Source: Ascidiella aspersa (Eukaryota). Taken from it: a stretch of 64,000 bases of DNA. The position numbers and the translations under genes are program-made. The notes beneath the pieces are model-generated. The model saw nothing but the letters and a program-made list of their open reading frames with translations, was not told the DNA's origin and ran no database searches. Location of the stretch: assembly GCA_963924565.1 (NCBI GenBank), contig OZ004610.1, forward strand, positions 14,012,001 through 14,076,000, given 5' to 3'. Shown piece after piece: positions 12,632-59,400 of this stretch; position 1 is the first letter of the stretch; every line of letters begins with the position of its first letter.

Positions 12632-15600
12632 ATGAAGTTTCCTTTTGTTGCCCTTACCAGTCTTGTGTTGCTTCCGACCGCAATGCTTCTTAAAGTTCCA
12701 AACTGCTCGGAAGTACATGTAAATGCTGCTAATTCAGAGAGCAAATGCTGTGGATTCGAAGATGGTAAGAAACAGTTAACAGCTCAGTAGATTATAGTCA
12801 TAAAATTTTGACATCTGTTTCGCCTCGCAAACTATAAACCTTTGCGGAATCATATGGCCCTACAATTTTGCAATGCTAATTAGTTAACCTTTGATCAAGG
12901 TATCGTGTATATAATACACTTATCAATATCTAATGTAGCACCATCAGCAAATTATTTTTGTTGATCAGTGCAGATAAGCAACCATCATCACAACTGATCA
13001 ACAAACAACAATTTGTTATTGCAGTGGCCTTCAACCGTTTGCTTTGGAACGATTTGAAAGCAGCAAAGAATAATGTTAGTAAACACCTTACTGTTGAAAC
13101 GACAAGCGTTCTTCTTAACGAAAAATGGAGATTATCATGGAGTTACACCATCAAGGCAAATTACACAAAAATTGATTTGGCGTTTTTTACTGCCTACTAC
13201 AAAAATACGTAAGTTTTACACAGTTCTGCCATTTTCTAATTCTACGGAAAACAACACAGTGCATGTTTAAAAACCATGAACCTCGTTTTCTATGTTTAAC
13301 GCTGTTCTAGGACAAATGAGATGTACGAGCCGATTGATGGATGCTGCAACATCCCCCTAAAAAAGAAATATTGTCAAATATCACCAGACGATTTACCAGA
13401 CAATTTACCAGATGAACTGTTTTACAGTTACAGTTATGATGGATTCAGTTTAATCGCTATGAATGGTGTAGATCGTAAGTAAATTTCTTTTTGCAACATA
13501 TTTATGTTTTATCTTTCAGGTGCTGTTCTAGATTGCTTTTTGTTTGAGGGGAGGGGGGCATATATTTTCAGTTATGACGTCACAAATTTACGTGTAAATA
13601 TCATTTGACGGTCCAACAAAAATTAAACATAAATTATAACTTTTATAAATTGCTGTCTTTTCTAGGCAATACCACCCCTCAGAAAGTCGTGTGGTGCGAC
13701 AACAAACCAAACAATGCCAGACGTTGCATGATCGTGGACAGAACTACTGGCGAAATGAAACCTACGGACCCGATACTGGAGGGAACGAGTGACATTGATA
13801 GGCGAAATGATTTTGTCGCTTTGGGAATCGCTCGCACTTGCACCTACGAGGTGTACAAAGGTATATTATAGTTTTAAAAGATCTGATCAGAAAAAAAAGT
13901 AGAGATGGACTTTCTTGCCGTGTCTAATAGGCCTGTTAATCGTGATAAATCGATCTTATTTGTCACGTTTCATGGAACAGTCTTGCCACTTTTCATTTAA
14001 AGTAAAGTCGTTTTCGCTTTTTCAAAAAACTCGTCTCCCATTTGCCAGACGTTATACAAAAGAACAAGACTCTGCCTCAAGTTGACGCAGCTGCACAATT
14101 TTTCGATCGTACGATGTGGGTTGCCACGTCGTACAAAAACAAGTTCGTTCCAGAAGATTCCATCTGCAGTAATTCTCACAACCTCAGCACCAGGAATATG
14201 AACTACACTACCAAAAAAGATCACTTTCTTTGTTTCAGCTTTAATGTGACCAACCCGATAAACTACTACTGCATGGAACCGTCATGTTAGTAATTAAATA
14301 AGTCAAGTAACTAAAACAGTGCAAATAGTCGTTACAGTATAGTTGAGTTGTTAAGTTTTGCCAGTGAAAGCATATTAAAAGCCTAAATATAACCATTTGT
14401 TTAGAAATGCAGAGTAAAGTTTATTGTTTATCTAATTGCTTGCACCCATTCTACATAATGAAAACTTTGCATTGCAGATTCACCCAACCCTCCGAAAAAA
14501 GAAAAAATACAGCAACCTTTGGTTTTGATTATTGCTCTTAGCACTTTGGCAGTCTGCTTATTGTTGCTGATTGGGGTTTTGATTTTGTGGCGTTGCAGAA
14601 GAGCATGCAAGTCTTTCTTCAAGGTCAAATTACCTGGCAATCTGGTACGAAATATTTTTTAACTGAATTGTGCGGCTCGAAATGCTTCTTTCGTGCCACG
14701 TTGTATTTAAATAAATTGTCCCTTGTTCGGCTTTCATCACGTTGCTAAGCTTTTCCGAGCACATGCTGTTTAAAGTAAATTTATATTGTATTGATTTTAA
14801 AATTAACCACAAAATAATTCTTTGAAAAATAAAAATAACCAGATATAGAATCGGTTAAAAAGAGGCGTATGTGTGTATTGCAGTAAACTTGTGAGAAAAG
14901 TCGTAAACAAAGTGGTATTCCAATACGTTTGGGTTGTATGCATCAAGGCGATAAAACCCCCTCTTCTTTATCCCTTCCGCTTTGTATTTACCACGAATTC
15001 GGCTGCACGCCGCTAAAATGCGTTTGTGAATGCGCCTCGTGAGGTTTTTATTCTCGGTTAAGACTGCGGCTGTTTGCGCTCGCCACAATCAACAATAGCG
15101 ATTGGTGTGACGCCGGCCTCGTCAGAGAAATCACCGCGAAGCGTAGGACACCTTTCCTGTTATGTGCACAACACGGCCACCGCAGAGCCTCTATTCTATG
15201 GGACACCTCCGATGGGTGCGCGATTGTGATTGCTTTGGGTTATGATATGCCCTTTGCAGCGTACTGCAGAATGCAGCATTGTTTATGTTAAGCCATCTTT
15301 CATGATACTTTGGATGCGGCGAGATGCCTGTTTGGATGGACTTTTTCCGTGTACGCATAAATGTAACGAACGAAAATCACGAATTTTTACAGTCGTCTTA
15401 GTCGTTGAATACATCGCAAAACTGGACCGCAAGCAGTCGGTTCATCTTTTTTTAAAGCATCTATCTATCGGATCGGATAATTGGAATAGGTTTATTGGTG
15501 CTTACCAACTGGCAGTGTTAACGTGTGACAATTTCAGCGTGAACCACCTATATGAACTACCTAAAAACACGATATATAAACCTTTGCGTCACGAAGACCA

Positions 15601-18327
15601 AGGTTCAACACACGCAGAAACGTTTTTTTTTGTAAGAGAATTTACTAGTTCCTTGTTTTTTTTGTAAGAGAATTTACTAGTTCTCACAACATTAACTAAT
15701 TGCGAAATTTTGTTTATAGGAATCGGACAAGGATTGGTCCCGTCCGAGTACGTTTAAGAACATTGATGATCGCGAAAAACCTGGAGACCTCTTTATTTAC
15801 GAAAAACCTGAAACACAGAGTAAGTGTTTTTTTTCGGCCAGGATGATGTTCACGCCGCAATGTTTTACATTGTTACATTGGTTTTATCAATGATACTATA
15901 CAATATAGTATCATTGGTTTTATCGGTTCTCTGAAGCAAGGGTATATTTTTTTGGCCATAAATTTTTAGCCCTCTTTTTATGTAGAAAAAAAAATTGTCG
16001 TAATAATAGGAATTTAGCAGTCAGGTAATTTTAAGAAAACAACAGATATTGTCCTTACACTGAGAAAATTACAAACTCTTTGTAAACTCCTGGTGAAATG
16101 GATACTTTTATCAAACCCGCAAAATAATATTAAAAATCACATGTAAGGTGAGAATTAAAGTATAGTTTGCACGAGTTTTTAGTAATTGGTCTCGTACTAA
16201 AATAATGCGTTGTTTTAACTATTCTCAATTTTAAATCTTGTTACCTGCGCAATTTATGGAACTTAGTCGTAATATTTAGGCATCCACAATTTCAAATTTG
16301 TTATAAGCAACAAAGTTGGTTGATGTTTGTTTGCCGAAAGGTGCGTTTTCGTAATGTTCTTTCTTCCTATTGCCTTTGGCGACAGAGCCGTGTGCAAAAA
16401 AATAAGCCGCGTGTGTCAACGTGATAAATTCTTCACAACCCTGTTTAAACTTTAAATGTACATTGTGTAAGTCTCCTTCTAATGTATTTTAACTGAAGTT
16501 CAGTCTCTGTATCGACAGTGCGGGTATGTCTAACTTATTAGCATTTCTAAAAACTTATGTAGCGAAATTTTTAATGTCGCAATAACCATTAGCGTGATAG
16601 TTATAGACATTTGCATACAATTTTTATCAACATTTAAAAAAAGGATGAGTGCCTTGTAGTGGAAAAATTTCAGGTGTCACTGTGAACTTACAATAGCATT
16701 CAAACGAAAGTAAAGAGCATTTGGTCAAAGCAGGTGTTTGCGAACACGTTGAGTTATTTCAACCACGCCATTATGGCAACAAAACACGGCAACGGTAAAC
16801 ATCCTCTTAATGTTCTTACCCGACAGAATGCGAGGATGCACGCTGACAAAGTCGACAACTTAACGTGTAATTGAGCGCATAGCCTATATCTACAGACTAC
16901 AGTAATCACTCTTGTGTTTCCCGACAAAAAGTCCAACGTCAGTCCCGTGACCCGCGTGCCAGTTCACCTTGTAGCCGCTTTACTGTTTAACGAGGACGCG
17001 ATAGCTTGAATCGGCACCTCAATACCAGTAAGGAAGATGCCGTAGAACTGGGGCAACCGCACTGTTTCGTCTAAAAGTGATACAATAACCTTGTTATGCG
17101 ATGCTGTCAAATTACAAAGACTTTGGATAGTAATGCTGCAGTGCTTTTTGTTGTTTACAATAGCTGTCAGACGACTGCCGAATCCGTCGCGTATGCGCGA
17201 AATTAACAGAAATGTCATGTCATAAAACTGTTGCATCTGGCTGAACAAGCTAATGACTTTGTTTTTTGGCGAAAAACAGAGCCGTTATAGTCACCGAGGT
17301 GAGCCCCGCAGGGAAGCGTCAGACTAACATTTTTTGTTTTTGTTTTTTTAGGTGTTCCGAATTCCGGTGAAGCGCCACCACCAGTTGTTCACCATTTGCC
17401 TTATCTCGTAACAGGTATAAAATAATTTTAGGCACAATTCAGTGGTAAAGCGGGCCCATCTAGTTATAGCTTGGTTTGCTGCAACAATAACTTTGGTGTA
17501 GTATTTTGACTTGCGGAATATGTGGTCCACAAACGTTATGTAAACATTTCTCTAATGTGCGTACACGTAAAACCATAACCAACAAAGGCGACTGTTCCAT
17601 TACTAGGTGTTTTTGAAGGTTTCAATAGATGTACAATAACTTGGAATTTAGTGCAATATTTAAGGTTGTGATGCGCTAGAATTTTTTAATACCCTTACTT
17701 GTTTGTCGCACAGACGAAAGCTGGACGAACAGAAACGATGCCTACATGGACAAGTCGGAAGCCGACGAATCGCTGATGGGTTCGGTCAGCACAGGCTGCT
17801 ACCAGGACTCCGGCATGGTTCGGGCCCTTGGCGATAGCGGCAGTACGAACGCCTCTTCGCAGTGGACGTCCCGCAGCAGTTCCAGCAGCAGCAGCAGTAG
17901 TGAGGTCCGTGTGGACGCGCAGCAGCTGGATGAGTGTGTCCACCCGTGCGAGTCAGACCTATCGGGCTCGTCTGGCCTGCAGAAGGCCTTCCTCTCTGTC
18001 AGCGACGCGGGTGAAGAGCTGTGCGGCGACCAATCCGACAGCATCGCCTTTCGCAAATCGAAGGCGAGCGGCAACGACACCGGTTACAGTCGTTCAAGCA
18101 GCAGCGATGACGAAGCGGGGAACGGCAAAAGGCCATTCAGCAAGATCGGACCGGTCGAGTCCAGCGACAATGTTTTTCACCCGTCTTTGGACGACCAGCC
18201 TGCGGTGGGGGTGATCACGAAACGTAGCGCTGAACAGGAGCGTATTTTTCGAGCGCTTTTCGCTCCGTTGGTCGAAGATAAGTCAGTTGCCCCTGGTAAT
18301 TTAGCACCTGGCTACTGGAACAAGTAA
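12632..18327 (+). CDS. Single-pass type I membrane receptor, class II cytokine receptor-like (IFN/IL-10 receptor family), 8 coding exons, 597 aa
   Basis: Exons 12632-12764, 13025-13208, 13311-13474, 13666-13860, 14049-14285, 14478-14644, 15720-15819 and 17714-18327 are all GT-AG bounded and join in frame (1794 nt). Signal peptide MKFPFVALTSLVLLPTAMLL. Ectodomain has LSWSY..FFTAYYK..GCCNIPLKKKYCQIS and LCFSFNVTNPINYYC. TM segment LVLIIALSTLAVCLLLLIGVLILW is followed by RCRR. The cytoplasmic tail has KLPGNL, is acidic and Ser-rich, and ends PGYWNK*. The gene model is solid; the family call is motif-based. Confidence 0.75.
15624..15683 (+). repeat. Short tandem duplication of ttttttttgtaagagaatttactagttc (x2)
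   Basis: Directly visible in the intron just upstream of receptor exon 7. Confidence 0.85.
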
Positions 18328-29500: not shown

Positions 29501-32500
29501 GCAATGACACGGAATCGCGTCAGTGAAACGCTGAGTAGCGACTAAGTCGGCGTGTTTTGCCTTTCGAACCTGCGCGATTGTTGTTTCAGTCCACGACAAA
29601 CGATGTTCCTTGCTGCTGTTGGCAAAAGCTGTTTTGTTTTTTCGGCGGCGACACCTGTGCGTGAAAGGACAAATTAACTTACCGACAAACACCCTTTTGA
29701 GTTTCCAAGTGGGAGATTTCACGCTGTTTTATGAGAAAAAATATGTTTGAAGGATCGTGCGATAGTTTTCGTACCATTGACTATAACAAATTTTTCAACT
29801 TGCGAACCACATTTTTATCCATTAGTTTAATAATAGCCGCCTATAAAGTGGGTTAACGTGTGATGAATTTAAGTGCAAATCTACAATAGGAAGCTGGAGT
29901 AGGCTGTTGCGAGGGCCACAACACAGATAATTTGCAAAAACATGGTCATAAATAATACGTATTAAGGAATTTTGATAAATGGCGCTCCTTATGTAACAGA
30001 CAGACACTGTTCTGATTGTGTTATTTAAATCAGTCACATCGCAACGTAATATCGCAGTCTATTATTGGGTAAGGTATAATTATTTTGTTATTTTCGCGAC
30101 TTTGGTAGACTTTATTTTAGTAGGAAAATTTACCTATTCCTCGTATAACAGCTAGAGAACCGCGTAATTTTCAGAACACGTTAACTTTTGCATTAAATCT
30201 TATATATTTGCCCTCATTATTGTTAGGTATATGTCAATGTCCACTGTGTATTAATTTTTCATGAACGTAGACAAAGGGCCTTATTTTATTTTCACCAGAA
30301 GGCTTTACTGCCAGCCGCGGTTACGTAAATGTAAGCGCAGACCGAGCAAGTGAACTGTAGCAGACAAACCCTCACTTTGTTAAGGTGAAATTCCGCACGT
30401 TCCTTTGGTATTTCCTCCAGTCACGTCTGCTTCGCTTTCGATAAATTAAACTTTGAGAGATGTAAACTTATTCGTTGTCTCAAACTAAAGGCGTCGGGAA
30501 GTGTCATTTGCTCAACGGTTTTGGCCTACCTACTGGTTGAAATACCAACGCAAAATAAGTAATGTTTTTTGCGCTGCTGCTTTTATGCAGTAGTGGCGCG
30601 TGGCCCATACAAAGCAATATCACAAACCAGGTGAAAGTTACGATAATATTTAATGTTAACTTATATATTGTGTATTATTTTTATTTTTAATTTTTCTACC
30701 AAGGTGCAATAATAAACATTTTAACAACATACGCCTAATTTTTAAGTAATCAGCAGCAGTTTAAGCTTACCGTTGGGTTTATTTGCGGAACGCAGGTCAA
30801 ACATTTTACTCTGTTGGTCGTTTTTAACAGTCTTACCAATCCTAAACTGAAGTGATATATGTCTTTATTCGTAACTAGGATCGTTTCCTTCGGACGTTGT
30901 CAGCGATAACGGCGCAGTATCAATAGAATACCGTTTAGCTGCACCAAAACTATGCAAAAATCACCTTTTTTGCAAGCAATGCATTACCATTAGCAAATAC
31001 TATAATCTGTCGAATACAATTTGCAGTGAGACCCAGGGGTGGGCAAATATTTTTGACTGGAGCCGCACAAGAAACAGAAAATGTGTTTGAGAGCCGGGAC
31101 AAAAGAAATAACTAAAAAACATAACTTGAAGTGTGACTTTTTTTAAAAGAAAGCTGTAAATACCCTTGCTTTGACAACCTAGCAAAAGTAGGTTTATGTG
31201 AGGGTGTCTTACAAGTGTAACTTATTGACTGAAATAAAAATCGTGCATAAAAAGTTCTGTTGAAAATTGGCGGCACGTCAAAATAACTTGCTTGCTTGCA
31301 GGGCCGGCCCGACCCCATCCGCGGTCTGGATCTGCCGTATAAGTCCAGGAAGTATCGCATGCGAGAAGAAAGCAAGTGACCACTATGCGTTGTACCTCTC
31401 TCCAAACCGAAACTTAACACTTTCCGGTAATCGGGTCAAAACATAATTCTTTTTGCCTTCTTTAGGTGCCCCCCGACACCAAATCTCTGGCCGAATTAGA
31501 GGCCAAGCTCGCGGAGGCCCGACGTCAGTACGAGGCACAGTGCGCCGAGGTGGACCGGCTCCAGGCCCGCTTGGCCGACAGCGAACGGGATAGCGTGCTG
31601 CGTGTCGCGGCCGGAAGCGGCTGGAAGGAGCGTCACGACGCACAACTGAAGATCGCCGCGGATTTACAGGATCGCAACGCCGTGTTGGAGAATGAGCTGA
31701 CCAAGGTATTTTCTTTTACCAATAATATGTTTTTGAACTCCGCAATTACCGACCGCTGTTCAAAGTTGGTCTATAGCTGTATCGCGGGTATTTTTACGAC
31801 CAGTGTTGAACAGGAAGAGATTATAGGTAATTAATTTTGTAGATGTTAAAGCTGGTAATTCCGTAAATATGACGAAGTTTGAGTTTGATTTTTCATTTTG
31901 TGACTTAAATGTACTTTTAAAACCAGTTTCTATAGTCTCTATAGTTATAGTTTGTAAAGCTGCGTTGGAAAGCAAAATATTTCAGTACAATTTTTAAGAT
32001 TGACCAGTGTTTATATTAAACAAATAATCTAATAACCTACAAAGTGTTATATTAAGGTAACTTAAAAACTTTGACGCATTTACACAAATGTAATTGGGGC
32101 CAGCTGAGACCGACGCTATATTCATACTTAAAAGCAAATTTCGCTGTTATTGCTTGGTCGCAGTTGCAGTAGGCGAAAGGCCACCAATTTTCTCGCGAAT
32201 AGTTCTTACAGCAGCAGTAAAGTATGCCCCTACTCGCCTGGTAATTTCGTTACCTGACTGAGCTGCTATCTATGAAATAGGCGCCTTCGCCCGAGTGTAC
32301 CTTGGGTAAGTGTTCCACGTCCAAAAAATCTTTGCGCTATGCTGCTTTGATCGCGTATCCAGTTTCGTTAAGTGAATTGGAACAATGTAATTTGTGGTTT
32401 GTGCTGTTGTTTAGTGCGGTAGCATACATATTTTGTAAACCACGTCTCTTGTTGTTTGCCACCCAGTACGATTTTGTGTCACGTTGGCCATTTTCTTTTG

Positions 32501-35500
32501 CGAAGAATTTGTCTTTCTTTTTTTAATTTAAACTAAATTCGATTTATTGATTTTTCACACAGCCATGCCCCTTAAAAAAATTTCTATCTAAAACCTTTTT
32601 TTTACGCTTCGCGCTTTGTAGTAAATCCGTTAATATCGAAGGCGCTATGTATAGCATGTTACGCCGCGTTACTAACAAAACTTGTGTATAGTTCAACTTT
32701 TAATAAATTACAGCATAAATGCCGATGTTTTTAACAAAATGCGATGCTTTTAATGTGCCTAAGATCATTTCGTTTGAATTAAAAGTTTTGCCAAATTTAA
32801 ACCCTATAAGTTTTTTCGCACTTCGCGCATTTAGCCAACATTTCAGTTCCATATTTTCTTGCGAGTTCCTTAGAGACTTCGCACGAGTTCGTTAGAGAAC
32901 ATCATGTCTTAATTATTTTATGACGTCACTTTTTGGCTTAAGTTGCTGAAGTCATTTCTGAAAAAAATTCAACTGGTGTAAAAAAAATGAACACTGTCAA
33001 TGCGGCTGTCACCAGCTGAAAGGTTATGCACCCCTTCGCTAGATGTTATGTATGTTTTTTCAAAGCGTTGCCAAACCATTCTGTTTCGCAGGTTTGGCGT
33101 CAGTTGAAGGAGGCCCTCGACAAGTTGAACGCCGCCGAGCGAGAGAAGGGAATGCTGGAGCTCAGGATAAAAGACAGCGAGGACGGGCTGGAGGCGGCCG
33201 GATTAAAACGCTCGATGAGCGATGATCGCGAAGAAGTGCAAAGACTTCGCACAAAGGTAACATGCTGCGAAATGAATGAATGTAAAAGTGTGTTACACGT
33301 AGACTTTGTTCCAATGCCATTTTATGTCCCAGTCTTAAGACGCGATTTAAACGTTTTTGCCTTCTGAATTTGTGGGGATTTTTAGGTAACTCAAGTTCAA
33401 GCGATATTTTACCCGCAATCCAATAGTCCAGTGGCTCTTAACCAGGGTTCAATCGAACCCTTGGGGTTCGACGCAGCTGTTTCAAGGGTTCAGCGAGAAC
33501 GTCCTCTGAAACATAAATGCTGTTATTTCAAGCTAAATTTGAATTTCTTTATGTGCCAAGGTGTCATGTGACAATATAAATTAAAAGTTTGGCCAATTTA
33601 ACCTATATAAATGCAAGTTTCAGCTGCTAGGAGGAAGAAACAAATACTGAGCGAAAATTTGGGGCTCGACGAACGCTTGCAAAATAACATAGGGGTTCTT
33701 CAGGTTACCAAAGTTTAAGAACCACTGCAATAGTCGAACACGGCAAATAACACATTGCAATTCGTACATGCTTCCAGCAGTGAGGACGATCAAAGCGTTC
33801 GAAAAGCTCGCACGCAATGCTAAGTTTTCACATCAAGCTTAACGAGCAGCACGTCTTATTCTATTAGTCAATATTTTTTTATAGTAAATAATCAAAAAAG
33901 AAAATTCTTAACGCCCTTTTTCTTTACGTTTTCTCTAGTCTAGAACAGTGTTTCTTAATCAGGTGAATGGTTCACCCCAGGGTGAATAAATTTTTTGCAG
34001 GGGTGAACCAACCAAAAGGGATGAATAAGGGTGAACCAACCAAAGGGGATGAATAAGGGTGAACCAACCAAAAGGGATGAATAAGGGTGAACCGTCAGAA
34101 ATGGATGATAGCTTGCGAGCAGGGCGGAAATTCCGGGTGTTTAACCTGTTCAGTGAACAAATCTAGAGATAGATGTTAGGGTTAACAAAACTTAAAAAGT
34201 TAAGAAGCACAGATCTAGAATATTACGAGGTCACTTGTCTCTTCGAGTTTAGGGGATCCGAAATCATGGTTAGTTGTTATTTGCTTCTTCATCAGCGGTT
34301 CTCAAACTTTTTCACCTAGAGATTCCTCTTGTTTGCTTGAAATAATGCCCGACCCAATATTATCTGAAAAATAAACCTAAAGATCAAGAGAATTGATTAA
34401 TTATCATTAAAACTCTTGAAAAATATGCCGGATAAACCAATTTGCCAGTCAATAAATTACAAAGTTTAAACTTCCATTTACTTTAAGAACCACAGCTCTA
34501 CACTGATCCAAACCGCAAAGAGTAAACCCAAAGTCATGCCAACAAACAGTTCCGCGCAAGACATTTTGTCTTTAGCCCCCAAATGCTCAGCTTTTACCAT
34601 TTTTACACTAGCTTGCTGAGTTTGAGGAGAAGCTGATGTCTGAAACCACGGGAACATCTGGTAAGCTGGACGTGAGGCTGGCGCAACTGGAAACTGAACT
34701 TAAGTTCAGCCAGGATCAACTCGCCGGAGAGACGAGGGCCAGGTGAGAGAATTTGGGGCACAAAATATTGTTATACAGATGGAATTTTGAACGGGTTAAA
34801 GCAGGGGTTCCCAACCTTTTTTACGCCGTGGCCACCTCTGAAAATTTTGAGAAATCAATGGCCCCCGCAATTTAGTTAGAATGATAAAATAATAGGAATA
34901 CAACACAGATAACTTTCATCATACTTCCTTATTTTAGCAGGGGTAGCCAAAATATTAATATTAACAAATTTTGAGGAAAAAAAAGAAAGTAAACTCAAGA
35001 TCAAGAAGTAGCTTATTGCTGTACTGTACTAGTATTTTTTTATTAAATTTGAATTGATTTCTTTTGTCATAGTGGAGTAGACTTAGATATGATACATTAA
35101 AAAATATATTATTTTTCAATGTTTTTCATGGTCCCCTTGAAAAAGGCTGATGGCCCTCAGGCTGGGAACCCATGGGTTAAAGTCTTGAGTAAAACCATTT
35201 ACGTAATCGCTATATTAAATTCGCAGCCAAGCGTTTTCTATATATGGCAAGTCAGGGTTTAATGCAAGCCATCACTCCGATAATTAAGTCGCTTATTGTT
35301 TGCCTTCAAAAAGTTATTTCTTGATATTCCGTTTGGCATGTAATTTCAAATATGCAAGGCCCAAAATATATTCGAGGCGAATAAAGTGTGTGTTGAAGAT
35401 TCGTCCAATGTAGGTATATAAGAAACGTTTTAGCTGCCCTTATTCCAAAGGAAGAAAGTCATAGTATTAGCTTAATTAAATTAGTGGCGTGGGTGTGTTT

Positions 35501-56400: not shown

Positions 56401-59400
56401 AAAGAATACATGCCATGAGTCTTTTTACATGATTTAGGGTTTTAAATGTGCATTGGGGCAACCCACGCCTCCTAAGGCAAAGTCCTGTACCTTATTGCTA
56501 TATCGTTAGTTATAAATGTTCAGAATAGTTAGGTGTAATTTATTTACCAAGCTGGCATATGTCATGTTTTGTGGTACTTGTTGCTGTAGGTCATAAAGCG
56601 ATAATGATAACAAACTAACAGCGTTAAAACAAGGACAAGTACAATTGAAACATGAATTGAAGAGTCTTGGAATAAACTTTAAAATTCACTCTTACCCAGA
56701 ACAGGTTGTTCAGTGTGTATCGTATGGAAAGCATTAGAAATTTAAGAACTTTAAAACTACTTTTCCGCAAACCATTGCCTAACTGAATAGTTTTTAACGT
56801 AAAGAATAAAAAAATTCCTAGTCGTTTTACAATATGGAAACCCTTGGACGATCACTGTTAAAATGACATAAAATAACTGTCGTAGAATCATACAACACCA
56901 GAATATCGCATCATACTTAAAATCAGGTCAACTGAACTTTATATACCAAACTGTTATGATATTGATGAAGTTTATAATACAATTTAACAACTTTATAAAT
57001 ATATACATACTAAATACGTTAATGTTTCTTCAACCTAAAATAATCAAAAAGAGCCATTTTGTGTCAAAGTTTGGTATTAGTCACAACATCCCTATTGGTT
57101 GCGTTAGTAAATTTGTTTCCTATTGACGCACGGAAGGATTTCATTAAAAATATTTGCACAGCGCAGGGGCGACTTTAAAAATTTCGCCTTGTCCTTTGTC
57201 ACGCCTCGATTTCACTGCACACGCGACATACTACGGAATACGTTAAAAGCGCAAGACGAGGAATTACCGCTGAGGTCCACGGGTTCATTGCTCTTGGCAG
57301 CAGCCTCCTTAAGCAGATGCTGGTATCTGACGATTTGGTCCTTCAGCCCTTCCAGGTCTAGCGAGTCCTCGAGGCGCGACTTGAGGGCGGCCACGCTCAG
57401 GTCTTCCTTCTCGCTCTCCTTGACCGCTTCCAGCTGCTTGGCGAGCAAGGTGTTCTCGACGTCGAGCTGGGCGATGCGGTCCTTTAGCTTTCTGCTCAAG
57501 GCAACAAGTTTAAAACAGAGTTTTTTCTGCGGCGCTAACTGATTTTTGCTGGTTTTAACACACAGCAGGTCGATTAAGGAAGCTGCTTTTAACTTAATGA
57601 GACAACGGTGTTAGCGATAATGTGCGATTAAGATATTTTTAAAAAAGTGTTTGAAAAAAATAAGACCGCAGTAGTAATAAACTGTAAAACGAATAAACGT
57701 TATGCTAGAGAAAACAGCCTGATTACGAACAGTATCGGCTCGACAAAAATAGCACATGTATCCATTTTATATACCCTATTGCTGATGAATTTAATAAATA
57801 ATAATAATGACGCATTTTATACTAGACACTAATACGATCCAGCGAAAAGCAGTGATAATTGAATCAGTACACAAATAGTAAACTAAATGATGTTACACGG
57901 TATGCAAAGCTTTCCTTACTGAATTGATAGCTGATCCTTCTGTCTGGATCCATCATACATTCCCAGTTTGTTGGAGATCTGCACCAGACGATTCTCGAGA
58001 TCGGCCACGCGTTCTTCTTCATTCTTCGCGATTCGCTTTTCCCTCTCCTCCATTTCTTCTACGCGATGGCGCTCGAGCTGGAGCTGCTTGTTATGGTTTA
58101 GCTGAAAAACAAATCGATTGATAAACTCCTGTCTTTGCAAGGAAAACGGCTTCTTATAACAAACTATATTCCACTGAGTTTTGTACTACCAAGTGTCCAT
58201 TCAACAGTGAGCCAAACCATCAAGCAGATTAAAATATTTTGCTATGTTTAATTAAAGTTGTTCAATAGCTTTTCAAACTTTTCAATAATCAATAGCTTTT
58301 CAAATTAAACATACACTGGGTTTGGTATCTTTACTGCTGCTTGGTAATAGTCCATTTAAAATTATTTTTGTTCCATATTGTTTGAAGCTTTTTGTTATCT
58401 CATACAATACGCTGACCCTGATTAATAAGAGCTTAGTTTATAACACGAAGTATTCTTCCAACAATAAAAAAAATTGACTAAGATAGTCCAGGGATATTCA
58501 GTACTTCCTATTAGTCCGATACCAATGTCCAACTTTTTTGATAAAATTACGTCCGCTGACCTACCTGATACCCAATGACGCCATTGTTAAACAAGCGTAA
58601 TCAATAAAACGTAAAAAGGGCGAAAAGGTAATGTTCTACACGACTTTAGGACAAAACTTGCTGTGCCGTTTGGAAAGTAACATTCCCTACCCTCATTTGT
58701 TCCATTTCATTCTGAAGCTGCAGAAGGAGGGGCGACGGGGTGTTGGCCTCCTTTTCGGCCGACTTGAGCCTTTTTCTCACTTCGAGCAGCTCCTCTTCGA
58801 GCTGACGAACCCTGCGCTTGTAGTCTTCGTTGTGCTGTGCTTCCTGGCCAGCATGCTGAGCCATACTCCGTAATTCCTTTACCTAAATGAAGAAACAACA
58901 ATCTGCTTTCAAATCGCATCACCTAAATTAATCGTAACCAACTGCCTACGATTTTTATGGTTTGTTTTTCAATTACAAGTTTTCATGGCGGGAACGTAAT
59001 GAATTAGAGTTCATTTTAATAAAAATCGTTGCCAATGTTTAAAATCTACTATAAAACTGTTCAGGATTTATTTTTACAACGCTATCCTTGAGAATAAAAT
59101 GACAGAAAGGGAAAACAATATAATCTACAAATGTACCACAGTTTCCAGCTTGTCGTTCTTTGTTCTTTCGTCGTTTAGCATACGCTGTATCTCCCTCAGC
59201 ATAATGGAGTGAGTCGCTTGCTCCTGCTCACGGTCTGTTTGCTGAACACGAATTTTGTCTCTAATCTAAAATCAAAGGTAAACTGTTATGTGAACTACAA
59301 AAGTAAACTTCATATCAGATTTGAACAGAGATGTAGGTTTTTTTTTAGTTGTGTTGAGAAACAGTAAACTTTGATAATAATTAATTAACTACGAAGTAAA

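Follow-up and report, generated by a model that had tools for sequence, protein, structure and literature searches.

Does a sea squirt genome carry, within the 64,000-nt window of Ascidiella aspersa DNA that we analysed, a receptor for an interferon- or IL-10-like cytokine? The initial annotation of this window had joined eight exons into a 597-aa protein and read it as a long-chain class II cytokine receptor with two FN3 domains (D1 and D2). Our data make it probable that the gene belongs, as a very diverged member, to the class II (interferon/IL-10) cytokine receptor family already known in sea squirts. The proposed family assignment draws support from a profile match of D1, from the place of a phase-2 intron and from a transmembrane exon that ends in KLPxxL; the second domain, one intron phase and the Pfam searches do not follow it.

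We found an intact and previously unannotated gene on the plus strand, in which all eight exons have canonical GT-AG sites and good polypyrimidine tracts and together make 1794 nt, or 597 codons, with no internal stop. Exon 1 (12632..12764) holds the start codon, a hydrophobic signal-type leader and a short cysteine-containing N-terminal stretch, and closes with the donor ATG/gtaaga of a phase-1 intron. Exon 2 (13025..13208) encodes the first half of D1, with its L-x-W and FF..Y strands, and is followed by a phase-2 intron; exon 3 (13311..13474) supplies the second half with a Cys-x8-Cys pair and is followed by a phase-1 intron. The membrane-proximal region is divided between exon 4 (13666..13860), which has three conserved cysteines and is flanked by phase 1 on either side, and exon 5 (14049..14285), which has a terminal Cys-x12-Cys pair and a GTTAGT donor, again in phase 1. 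Exon 6 (14478..14644) encodes a stalk, the transmembrane helix and a basic stretch, and ends in phase 0. Exon 7 (15720..15819) encodes a membrane-proximal cytoplasmic stretch with an acidic-hydrophobic, Box2-like patch before a phase-1 intron, and is needed in the model as the bridge between phase 0 and the last exon, whose acceptor is in phase 1. That exon (17714..18327) encodes a Ser/Asp/Glu-rich tail with DSG motifs and a C-terminal G-Y-x-x-K, and stops at TAA (18325-18327). We also identified an optional 63-nt exon (17352..17414, plus strand, phase 1 at both ends) that is absent from the initial model; it has a strong pyrimidine tract, a very strong AG acceptor and the donor CAG/gtataa, and its 21 additional stop-free residues would yield a predicted 618-aa form instead of the 597-aa one.

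In the joined model (618-aa numbering), hydropathy analysis places a hydrophobic leader at residues 1-23 and a single strong helix at about residues 318-341, giving the layout of a type I membrane protein with a signal peptide, ectodomain, one transmembrane helix and cytoplasmic tail. Twelve cysteines lie upstream of the membrane. The motif strings quoted in the initial annotation are all present in the translation where it had placed them.

About 20 kb upstream of the candidate, outside the window, we identified a divergently transcribed paralogue on the minus strand (C4:13999821-14004956). The two proteins are 29-31% identical (BLASTP E 4.6e-35), and the genes share six exons, identical intron phases and 12 aligned cysteines; the paralogue's equivalent of exon 1 likewise ends in phase 1, and exon 5 is 237 nt in both genes, at 36% identity. 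Because the paralogue keeps its exon plan, phases and cysteines, we consider the candidate to be a real coding gene, and the eight-exon, 597-aa model is borne out by its splice sites, its open frame and this matching plan for six exons. Cys, Trp and Tyr residues are selectively kept between the two proteins despite the roughly 30% overall identity, which implies that exons 1-6 have long been under purifying selection. It is accordingly very improbable that the locus is a silent or decaying duplicate, or that the exon model is partly wrong, especially in exons 7-9: its nine phase-compatible exons have canonical sites and are stop-free, and the selective conservation of the paralogues likewise speaks against decay. 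What such an account could draw on is that exon 7 and the optional exon have no counterpart in the paralogue, whose tail exons we looked for and could not locate.

Elsewhere in the genome there are at least three genes recognisable as class II receptors (C1:16.25 Mb, C7:10.31 Mb and C4:11.21-11.22 Mb), and we used these bona fide genes as the reference for the candidate. Like the candidate, all three begin with a phase-1 signal-peptide exon; a phase-2 intron divides D1 behind the FF..Y strand, exon 3 has a Cys pair near its start, the domain border is in phase 1 and the transmembrane exon precedes a phase-0 intron. Exon 3 of the C1 gene is 155 nt, as is that of the paralogue. Pairwise similarity of the candidate to the three genes is absent outside D1. 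For D1 itself, we compared a profile of exons 2 and 3 of the candidate and its paralogue with the corresponding D1 profile of the C1, C7 and C4 genes, a MAFFT-built reference of three sequences only. In hhalign, the two profiles aligned with a score of 29.1, a probability of 58% and P 9.6e-5, one of about a dozen D1 comparisons made in all. The alignment spans 43 columns covering the L-x-W, FF..Y and Cys-Cys motifs, in the register that the initial annotation had proposed, which supports its assignment of the D1 motifs. None of 240 column shuffles reached the real score (mean 10.9, sd 2.4, maximum 21.0; z 7.45), and the reversed query scored 11.5. The match is comparable to those of each bona fide D1 with the other two (P 1e-4, 4e-6 and 5.5e-4). 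Generic FN3 domains did not produce it: the candidate D1 did not match generic FN3 (P 0.34), and generic FN3 repeats scored P 0.38 against the class II D1 profile.

Divided by exon, the comparison gave P 0.0025 in the expected register for exon 2 alone against exon 2 of the three bona fide genes, and P 0.31 for exon 3 alone, which is not significant though the register was correct. The Cys-x8-Cys pair at the start of exon 3 is kept in the paralogue, aligns to the pair of the bona fide genes and falls within the 7-8-residue spacing expected of class II receptors. The phase-2 intron of the candidate falls within two residues of where the bona fide genes have theirs; in the alignment with the C1 gene, the offset is two residues. 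At the level of profiles, these sequence comparisons support homology of the candidate D1 to the tissue-factor-type D1 domains that the class II receptors of this genome carry.

Database searches gave no such signal. We found no sequence match to the candidate in Pfam, PDB sequences, 1.84 billion representative proteins or the ESM Atlas, and no homologue outside this genome. Searched exon by exon, Pfam recognised nothing in either the candidate or the paralogue, whereas the D1 half-exons of the bona fide C1 and C7 genes pass the Tissue_fac cut-off, bona fide half-exons scoring 29 bits. The Tissue_fac and Interfer-bind profiles had no match within the window, and a whole-genome search with an exon 3 HMM from the bona fide genes recovered those three genes only. 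These blanks would fit an orphan membrane protein with no kinship to cytokine receptors, in which the D1 match, intron phases and short motifs are coincidence, as would the marginal single-sequence D1 comparisons (P 0.02-0.03), whose score was reached in 3 of 100 shuffles. We regard this as improbable: the three-gene profile lifts the score well beyond its shuffles, the identical register is recovered separately against each bona fide gene, and agreement comes independently from the phase and position of the D1 intron and from the KLPxxL exon end.

The region between D1 and the membrane is a different matter. Exons 4-5 encode 144 aa with six cysteines, the terminal Cys-x12-Cys pair lying 18 residues before the transmembrane helix, and the initial annotation had taken them for a second class II FN3 domain. 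We obtained no support for this D2: exons 4-5 did not match the three-gene D2 profile (P 0.36-0.68), comparisons with D2 and generic FN3 profiles overall gave nothing significant (P 0.36-0.83), and an AF2 model of exon 5 alone was unusable (pLDDT 48.8). The D2 domains of the C1, C7 and C4 genes are 82-125 aa long with a phase-0 intron just before the Cys strand; in the candidate, the internal intron is in phase 1 and precedes the Cys-containing strand by about 60 residues, compared with 2-8 in the bona fide genes. Canonical class II receptor phases have been given as 1-2-1-0-1-0 (PMC8863823) and as 1-2-1-0-1 (bioRxiv 10.64898/2026.05.30.728932). The candidate and its paralogue both read 1-2-1-1-1-0, agreeing with five of the six phases of 1-2-1-0-1-0 and departing from the strict pattern. 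The C7 gene has the canonical phases; phase deviations do occur in this genome, since the C4 gene reads 1-2-1-0-2-0.

One account of this region is that the protein is a lineage-specific type I membrane protein in which only D1 is of class II type, the 144-residue module being something different, and that it is not a JAK-STAT receptor; it could, for example, serve as a cofactor in the manner of tissue factor, in adhesion or recognition, or as a decoy. We consider this unlikely, though several features lean its way. Besides lacking a D2 or FN3 signal, exons 4 and 5 are both flanked by phase 1, as self-contained modules often are, and the mature ectodomain, at about 295 aa, exceeds the roughly 175-250 aa of the bona fide class II genes of this genome. 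The paralogue has no KLPxxL motif, and its chain may end soon after the membrane; with so short a tail, its layout would resemble that of tissue factor (F3). Finally, a 2026 preprint whose structure-based screen covered a tunicate proteome among others reports no IFN-like ligand for tunicates, and no class II ligand has so far been found there (10.64898/2026.08.17.745176). On the other side, the blank for D2 is weak evidence because bona fide D2 domains hardly align with each other (P 0.001-0.026); their exons likewise miss Pfam when searched exon by exon.

The cytoplasmic region also argues for a receptor of the class II family. Tissue factor probably shares its D1 family (Pfam Tissue_fac) with the candidate, and both have one Cys pair in D1 and another in the F-G region of the putative second domain; but its tail, of about 20 residues, has no JAK site, whereas the candidate tail is 263 aa long (618-aa form), rich in Ser, Asp and Glu, and contains six tyrosines. 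The transmembrane exon closes with the six codons of KLPGNL, directly before its phase-0 intron, and the transmembrane exons of the long-chain C4 and C7 genes end alike, in KLPETL and KLPEKL, respectively, each before a phase-0 intron. These two genes also have long Ser-rich tails, and an acidic-hydrophobic patch comparable to theirs lies about 24 residues past KLPGNL in the candidate. From its sequence and position, KLPGNL is a putative JAK-docking motif resembling a JAK1 site or Box1: its LPxxL lies about 14 residues past the membrane and resembles the JAK1 site of IFNGR1, LPKSLV (PMC4544874). Genes for JAK and STAT are present in the genome, as judged by matches to the Jak1_Phl and STAT_bind profiles. 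We recognised no YxxQ-type STAT site in the candidate tail, and detected no significant similarity between it and the tail of the C4 gene.

Among vertebrate receptors, IFNLR1, IL10RA, IFNAR2 and IFNGR1 have the same layout of leader, D1 Cys pair, membrane-proximal Cys pair and one transmembrane helix, and vertebrate long-chain receptors share the long acidic, Ser-rich, tyrosine-containing tail. IFNAR2 and IFNLR1, like the candidate, have a tyrosine five residues from a basic C-terminus. The candidate nevertheless has no detectable similarity to any solved chain, its ectodomain is about 80 aa longer than those of vertebrate long-chain receptors, one intron phase differs, and no orthology can be assigned. 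Class I cytokine receptors are alike in their tandem FN3 logic, a related intron-phase pattern and Box1/Box2 JAK docking; the candidate differs from them in lacking a four-Cys D1 pattern and in a D1 profile match of tissue-factor type, and the class I WSxWS motif is absent from the translation of exons 4-6.

Amphioxus BjCRFB1/2 and lamprey CRFB7/CRFB14 are class II receptors with identified ligands and functional data (10.64898/2026.08.17.745176, 10.64898/2026.05.30.728932). These are pre-gnathostome receptors of class II type, as the candidate probably is, and like it they fit no vertebrate subtype; in contrast to it, their FN3, tissue-factor and interferon-binding domains can be recognised. 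The lamprey receptor reportedly acts as a heterodimer, and the lamprey genes keep the 1-2-1-0-1 phases (10.64898/2026.05.30.728932). The initial annotation had seen here the sign of an uncharacterised pre-vertebrate cytokine system. The gene is indeed new and diverged, but less novel than that implied, given the bona fide class II genes of this genome and the amphioxus and lamprey receptors with ligands described in 2026 preprints.

If the candidate is a class II receptor, its ectodomain would bind a secreted ligand, presumably a helical cytokine, jointly with a second chain, for which the adjacent paralogue is a candidate. A JAK would be held by KLPGNL together with the acidic-hydrophobic patch, ligand-driven pairing of the chains would activate it, and phosphorylated tail tyrosines would recruit a STAT. 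More speculatively, and with a chance that we rate as low, the candidate and its divergently transcribed neighbour may pair as a single heterodimeric receptor, lineage-specific and fast-evolving, for an undiscovered sea-squirt helical cytokine.

A class II identity for this gene would mean that some receptors of the tunicate class II repertoire have diverged beyond the reach of Pfam or any sequence search, and receptor counts in invertebrate chordates would be lower bounds because members like this one escape such searches. Its cytoplasmic region offers material to test against the single sea-squirt JAK, and the head-to-head pair of a long signalling-type chain and a chain without the JAK motif provides two ectodomain baits for a ligand search. 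Should the two prove to be chains of one receptor, tunicates would have retained an interferon/IL-10-like signalling axis whose ligand has so far escaped the screens.

The receptor-like gene at window positions 12632–18327 (+ strand) comprises eight exons with GT-AG borders throughout and good pyrimidine tracts, and its introns lie in phases 1-2-1-1-1-0, then 1. When joined by script, the eight exons give an uninterrupted frame of 597 codons, which bears out the 597-residue protein proposed in the initial annotation; the motif strings quoted there are also present in our translation. Exons 7–9 were placed by splice logic only. The optional ninth exon (17352–17414, + strand, 63 nt) is phase-compatible and would extend the predicted product to 618 amino acids. 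This product begins with a hydrophobic leader and ~295 residues containing 12 cysteines, followed by a single strong helix at about residues 318–341 and a 263-amino acid tail rich in Ser, Asp and Glu, with six tyrosines. Intron 6 contains a 145-amino acid open frame (15230–15667, + strand). Shortly before its acceptor at exon 7, this intron also carries a direct repeat of 28 nt, perfect and with a spacing of 32 nt (15624–15683); intron 7 holds an imperfect 20-nt repeat pair (15869–15924). Downstream of the receptor, heptad-like, Glu/Leu/Arg-rich open frames at 31466–33367 (+ strand) and 57212–57499 (− strand) suggest coiled-coil protein genes.

Exon 5 of the candidate matches a second copy upstream of the window (G000:C4:14000393-14000605, minus strand, on sequence C4 of the same assembly) with 36% identity and an E-value of 5e-10. 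We rebuilt six exons of this paralogue (G000:C4:13999821-14004956, minus strand), which lies 7–12 kb before the window start and is transcribed divergently from the candidate, with start codons 19.7 kb apart. The two genes share the intron phases 1-2-1-1-1-0 and an exon 5 of 237 nt, and their products are 29–31% identical over ~340 residues (BLASTP E 4.6e-35), with 12 aligned cysteines. That Cys, Trp and Tyr residues are kept at ~30% identity speaks for prolonged purifying selection across exons 1–6. No third member of the family was found in the 308.6-Mb assembly. The paralogue’s transmembrane exon lacks KLPxxL, a motif resembling a Box1/JAK1 site, and a scan of the downstream sequence for a tail or 3′ exons gave nothing convincing. 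If its last donor is unused, the paralogue ends 10 residues further on; its product may be a chain with a short tail.

Family and structure searches were performed exon by exon, while the joined candidate model was compared only with other loci of the same genome, using local BLAST and hhalign. The initial annotation had proposed, as a check, a search against the Pfam models of the two class II receptor domains, Tissue_fac (PF01108; N-terminal domain, D1) and Interfer-bind (PF09294; membrane-proximal domain, D2). Neither model matched within the window, and, run exon by exon, no Pfam model matched any part of the candidate or the paralogue. PDB sequences, searched with individual exons and with a two-row profile, returned chance matches only, and the ESM Atlas yielded no usable match. 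Among 1.84 billion representative proteins, nothing resembled candidate exon 5, the sole match being a chance one of 24 residues. AlphaFold 2 modeled exon 5 with its paralogue at a pLDDT of 48.8, so a fold search was unjustified. A weak Poxvirus 2L match to paralogue exon 5 (E 0.03) was taken as noise. Interfer-bind over-calls on exon-level matches in this genome, since its matches on sequence C8 are not receptors but ordinary FN3 repeat arrays. The C8 region (G000:C8:22.78-25.27 Mb) carries near-identical, Thr/Ser-rich single-exon FN3 repeats that score above the Pfam cut-off for this model.

As references, we rebuilt three recognizable class II receptor genes from the same genome. The compact C1 gene (G000:C1:16246936-16250100, 16.25 Mb, minus strand; phases 1-2-1-0) has lost one intron, since a single exon covers the latter half of D2 together with the transmembrane helix. 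The long-chain C7 gene (G000:C7:10308001-10318000, 10.31 Mb, minus strand) has the canonical class II phases 1-2-1-0-1-0 (PMC8863823; see also preprint 10.64898/2026.05.30.728932) and a Ser-rich tail exon of 452 amino acids, for which a search meant to deepen the reference profile found no homologue among 5.8 billion proteins. The C4 gene (11.21–11.22 Mb; phases 1-2-1-0-2-0) encodes 579 amino acids. These genes are so diverged that none recovers another in exon-level protein searches, and their D1 domains match among themselves with hhalign P-values of 0.0012–0.01. The Tissue_fac test had power, as D1 half-exons of the C7 and C1 genes score 29 bits, above the cut-off; if the candidate is a class II member, it would be far more diverged than either.

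We compared D1 of the candidate and paralogue (exons 2+3), as a two-row profile, with these references. Taken alone, the matches to single genes are marginal (P 0.018 for C1 and 0.032 for C7), with 3 of 100 shuffles reaching the real score in each case. Against a profile of all three D1 domains, the score was 29.1 (P 9.6e-5, hhalign probability 58%). The 43 aligned columns begin at the L-x-W strand, take in FF..Y and extend as far as the Cys pair. In 240 column shuffles of the query, scores averaged 10.9 (sd 2.4) with a maximum of 21.0, placing the real score at z 7.45, and the reversed query scored 11.5. Each bona fide D1 tested against the other two gave comparable P-values (1e-4, 4e-6 and 5.5e-4), so the candidate D1 behaves like a member. 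The match is also distinct from generic FN3 similarity: the C8 FN3 repeats gave P 0.38 with the class II D1 profile and the candidate D1 gave P 0.34 with generic FN3, neither being a match. Run separately, exon 2 gave P 0.0025 and exon 3 P 0.31, with the same register in both. The candidate’s phase-2 intron lies two residues off its aligned position in the C1 gene, and exon 3 is 155 nt in both the paralogue and the C1 gene. A genome-wide HMM search with bona fide exon 3 returned only the three known genes and chance matches, and did not recover the candidate; one match on sequence C3, with a double Cys, was rejected as having no neighboring receptor exons. Judged by its sequence profile, the candidate D1 appears class II-like.

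The region encoded by exons 4–5 (144 amino acids, six conserved cysteines) matched neither the three-gene D2 profile (P 0.36–0.68) nor FN3, though the best local pieces, at the T-G-E loop and at the strand that precedes the intron, fall at the expected places. Its internal intron is in phase 1 and precedes the Cys strand by ~60 residues, whereas the equivalent intron of the bona fide genes is in phase 0 and precedes that strand by 2–8 residues. It is here that the main rival explanation, a protein keeping a class II-type D1 only, has to be weighed; we consider it unlikely.

At the sequence level, the start of the cytoplasmic region likewise fits the class II pattern. KLPGNL closes the candidate’s transmembrane exon, and the next intron is in phase 0; the transmembrane exons of the C4 and C7 genes end in KLPETL and KLPEKL, likewise before a phase-0 intron. 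IFNGR1 has LPKSLV as its JAK1 site (PMC4544874). Exon 7 encodes Arg and an acidic-hydrophobic patch that aligns loosely with the C4 and C7 genes. This resemblance to both genes is suggestive only. A tail stretch common to the candidate and the C4 gene (DSG...W-x-SRSSSS) was rejected as compositional (BLASTP E 43). The genome contains STAT and JAK genes; a Jak1_Phl match (G000:C4:504977-505204) lies inside a 1034-amino acid stop-free open frame, so a large part of the JAK gene may be encoded by one very large exon.

The initial annotation’s highly diverged long-chain class II receptor thus stands in part, favored by the D1 profile match and the KLPGNL exon end and disfavored by the lack of a D2 or FN3 match in exons 4–5. 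We conclude that the candidate is probably a class II cytokine receptor of the long-chain type, very diverged and with its second domain unproven. Since class II receptors are known in this genome and in amphioxus and lamprey (2026 preprints 10.64898/2026.08.17.745176 and 10.64898/2026.05.30.728932), it would be a further member of an established receptor class. A 2026 screen found no ligand of this class in a tunicate (preprint 10.64898/2026.08.17.745176). On this reading, the tunicate class II repertoire would reach beyond detection by family models, and the candidate and its paralogue would provide two ectodomains usable as bait for a ligand that the screen did not detect.
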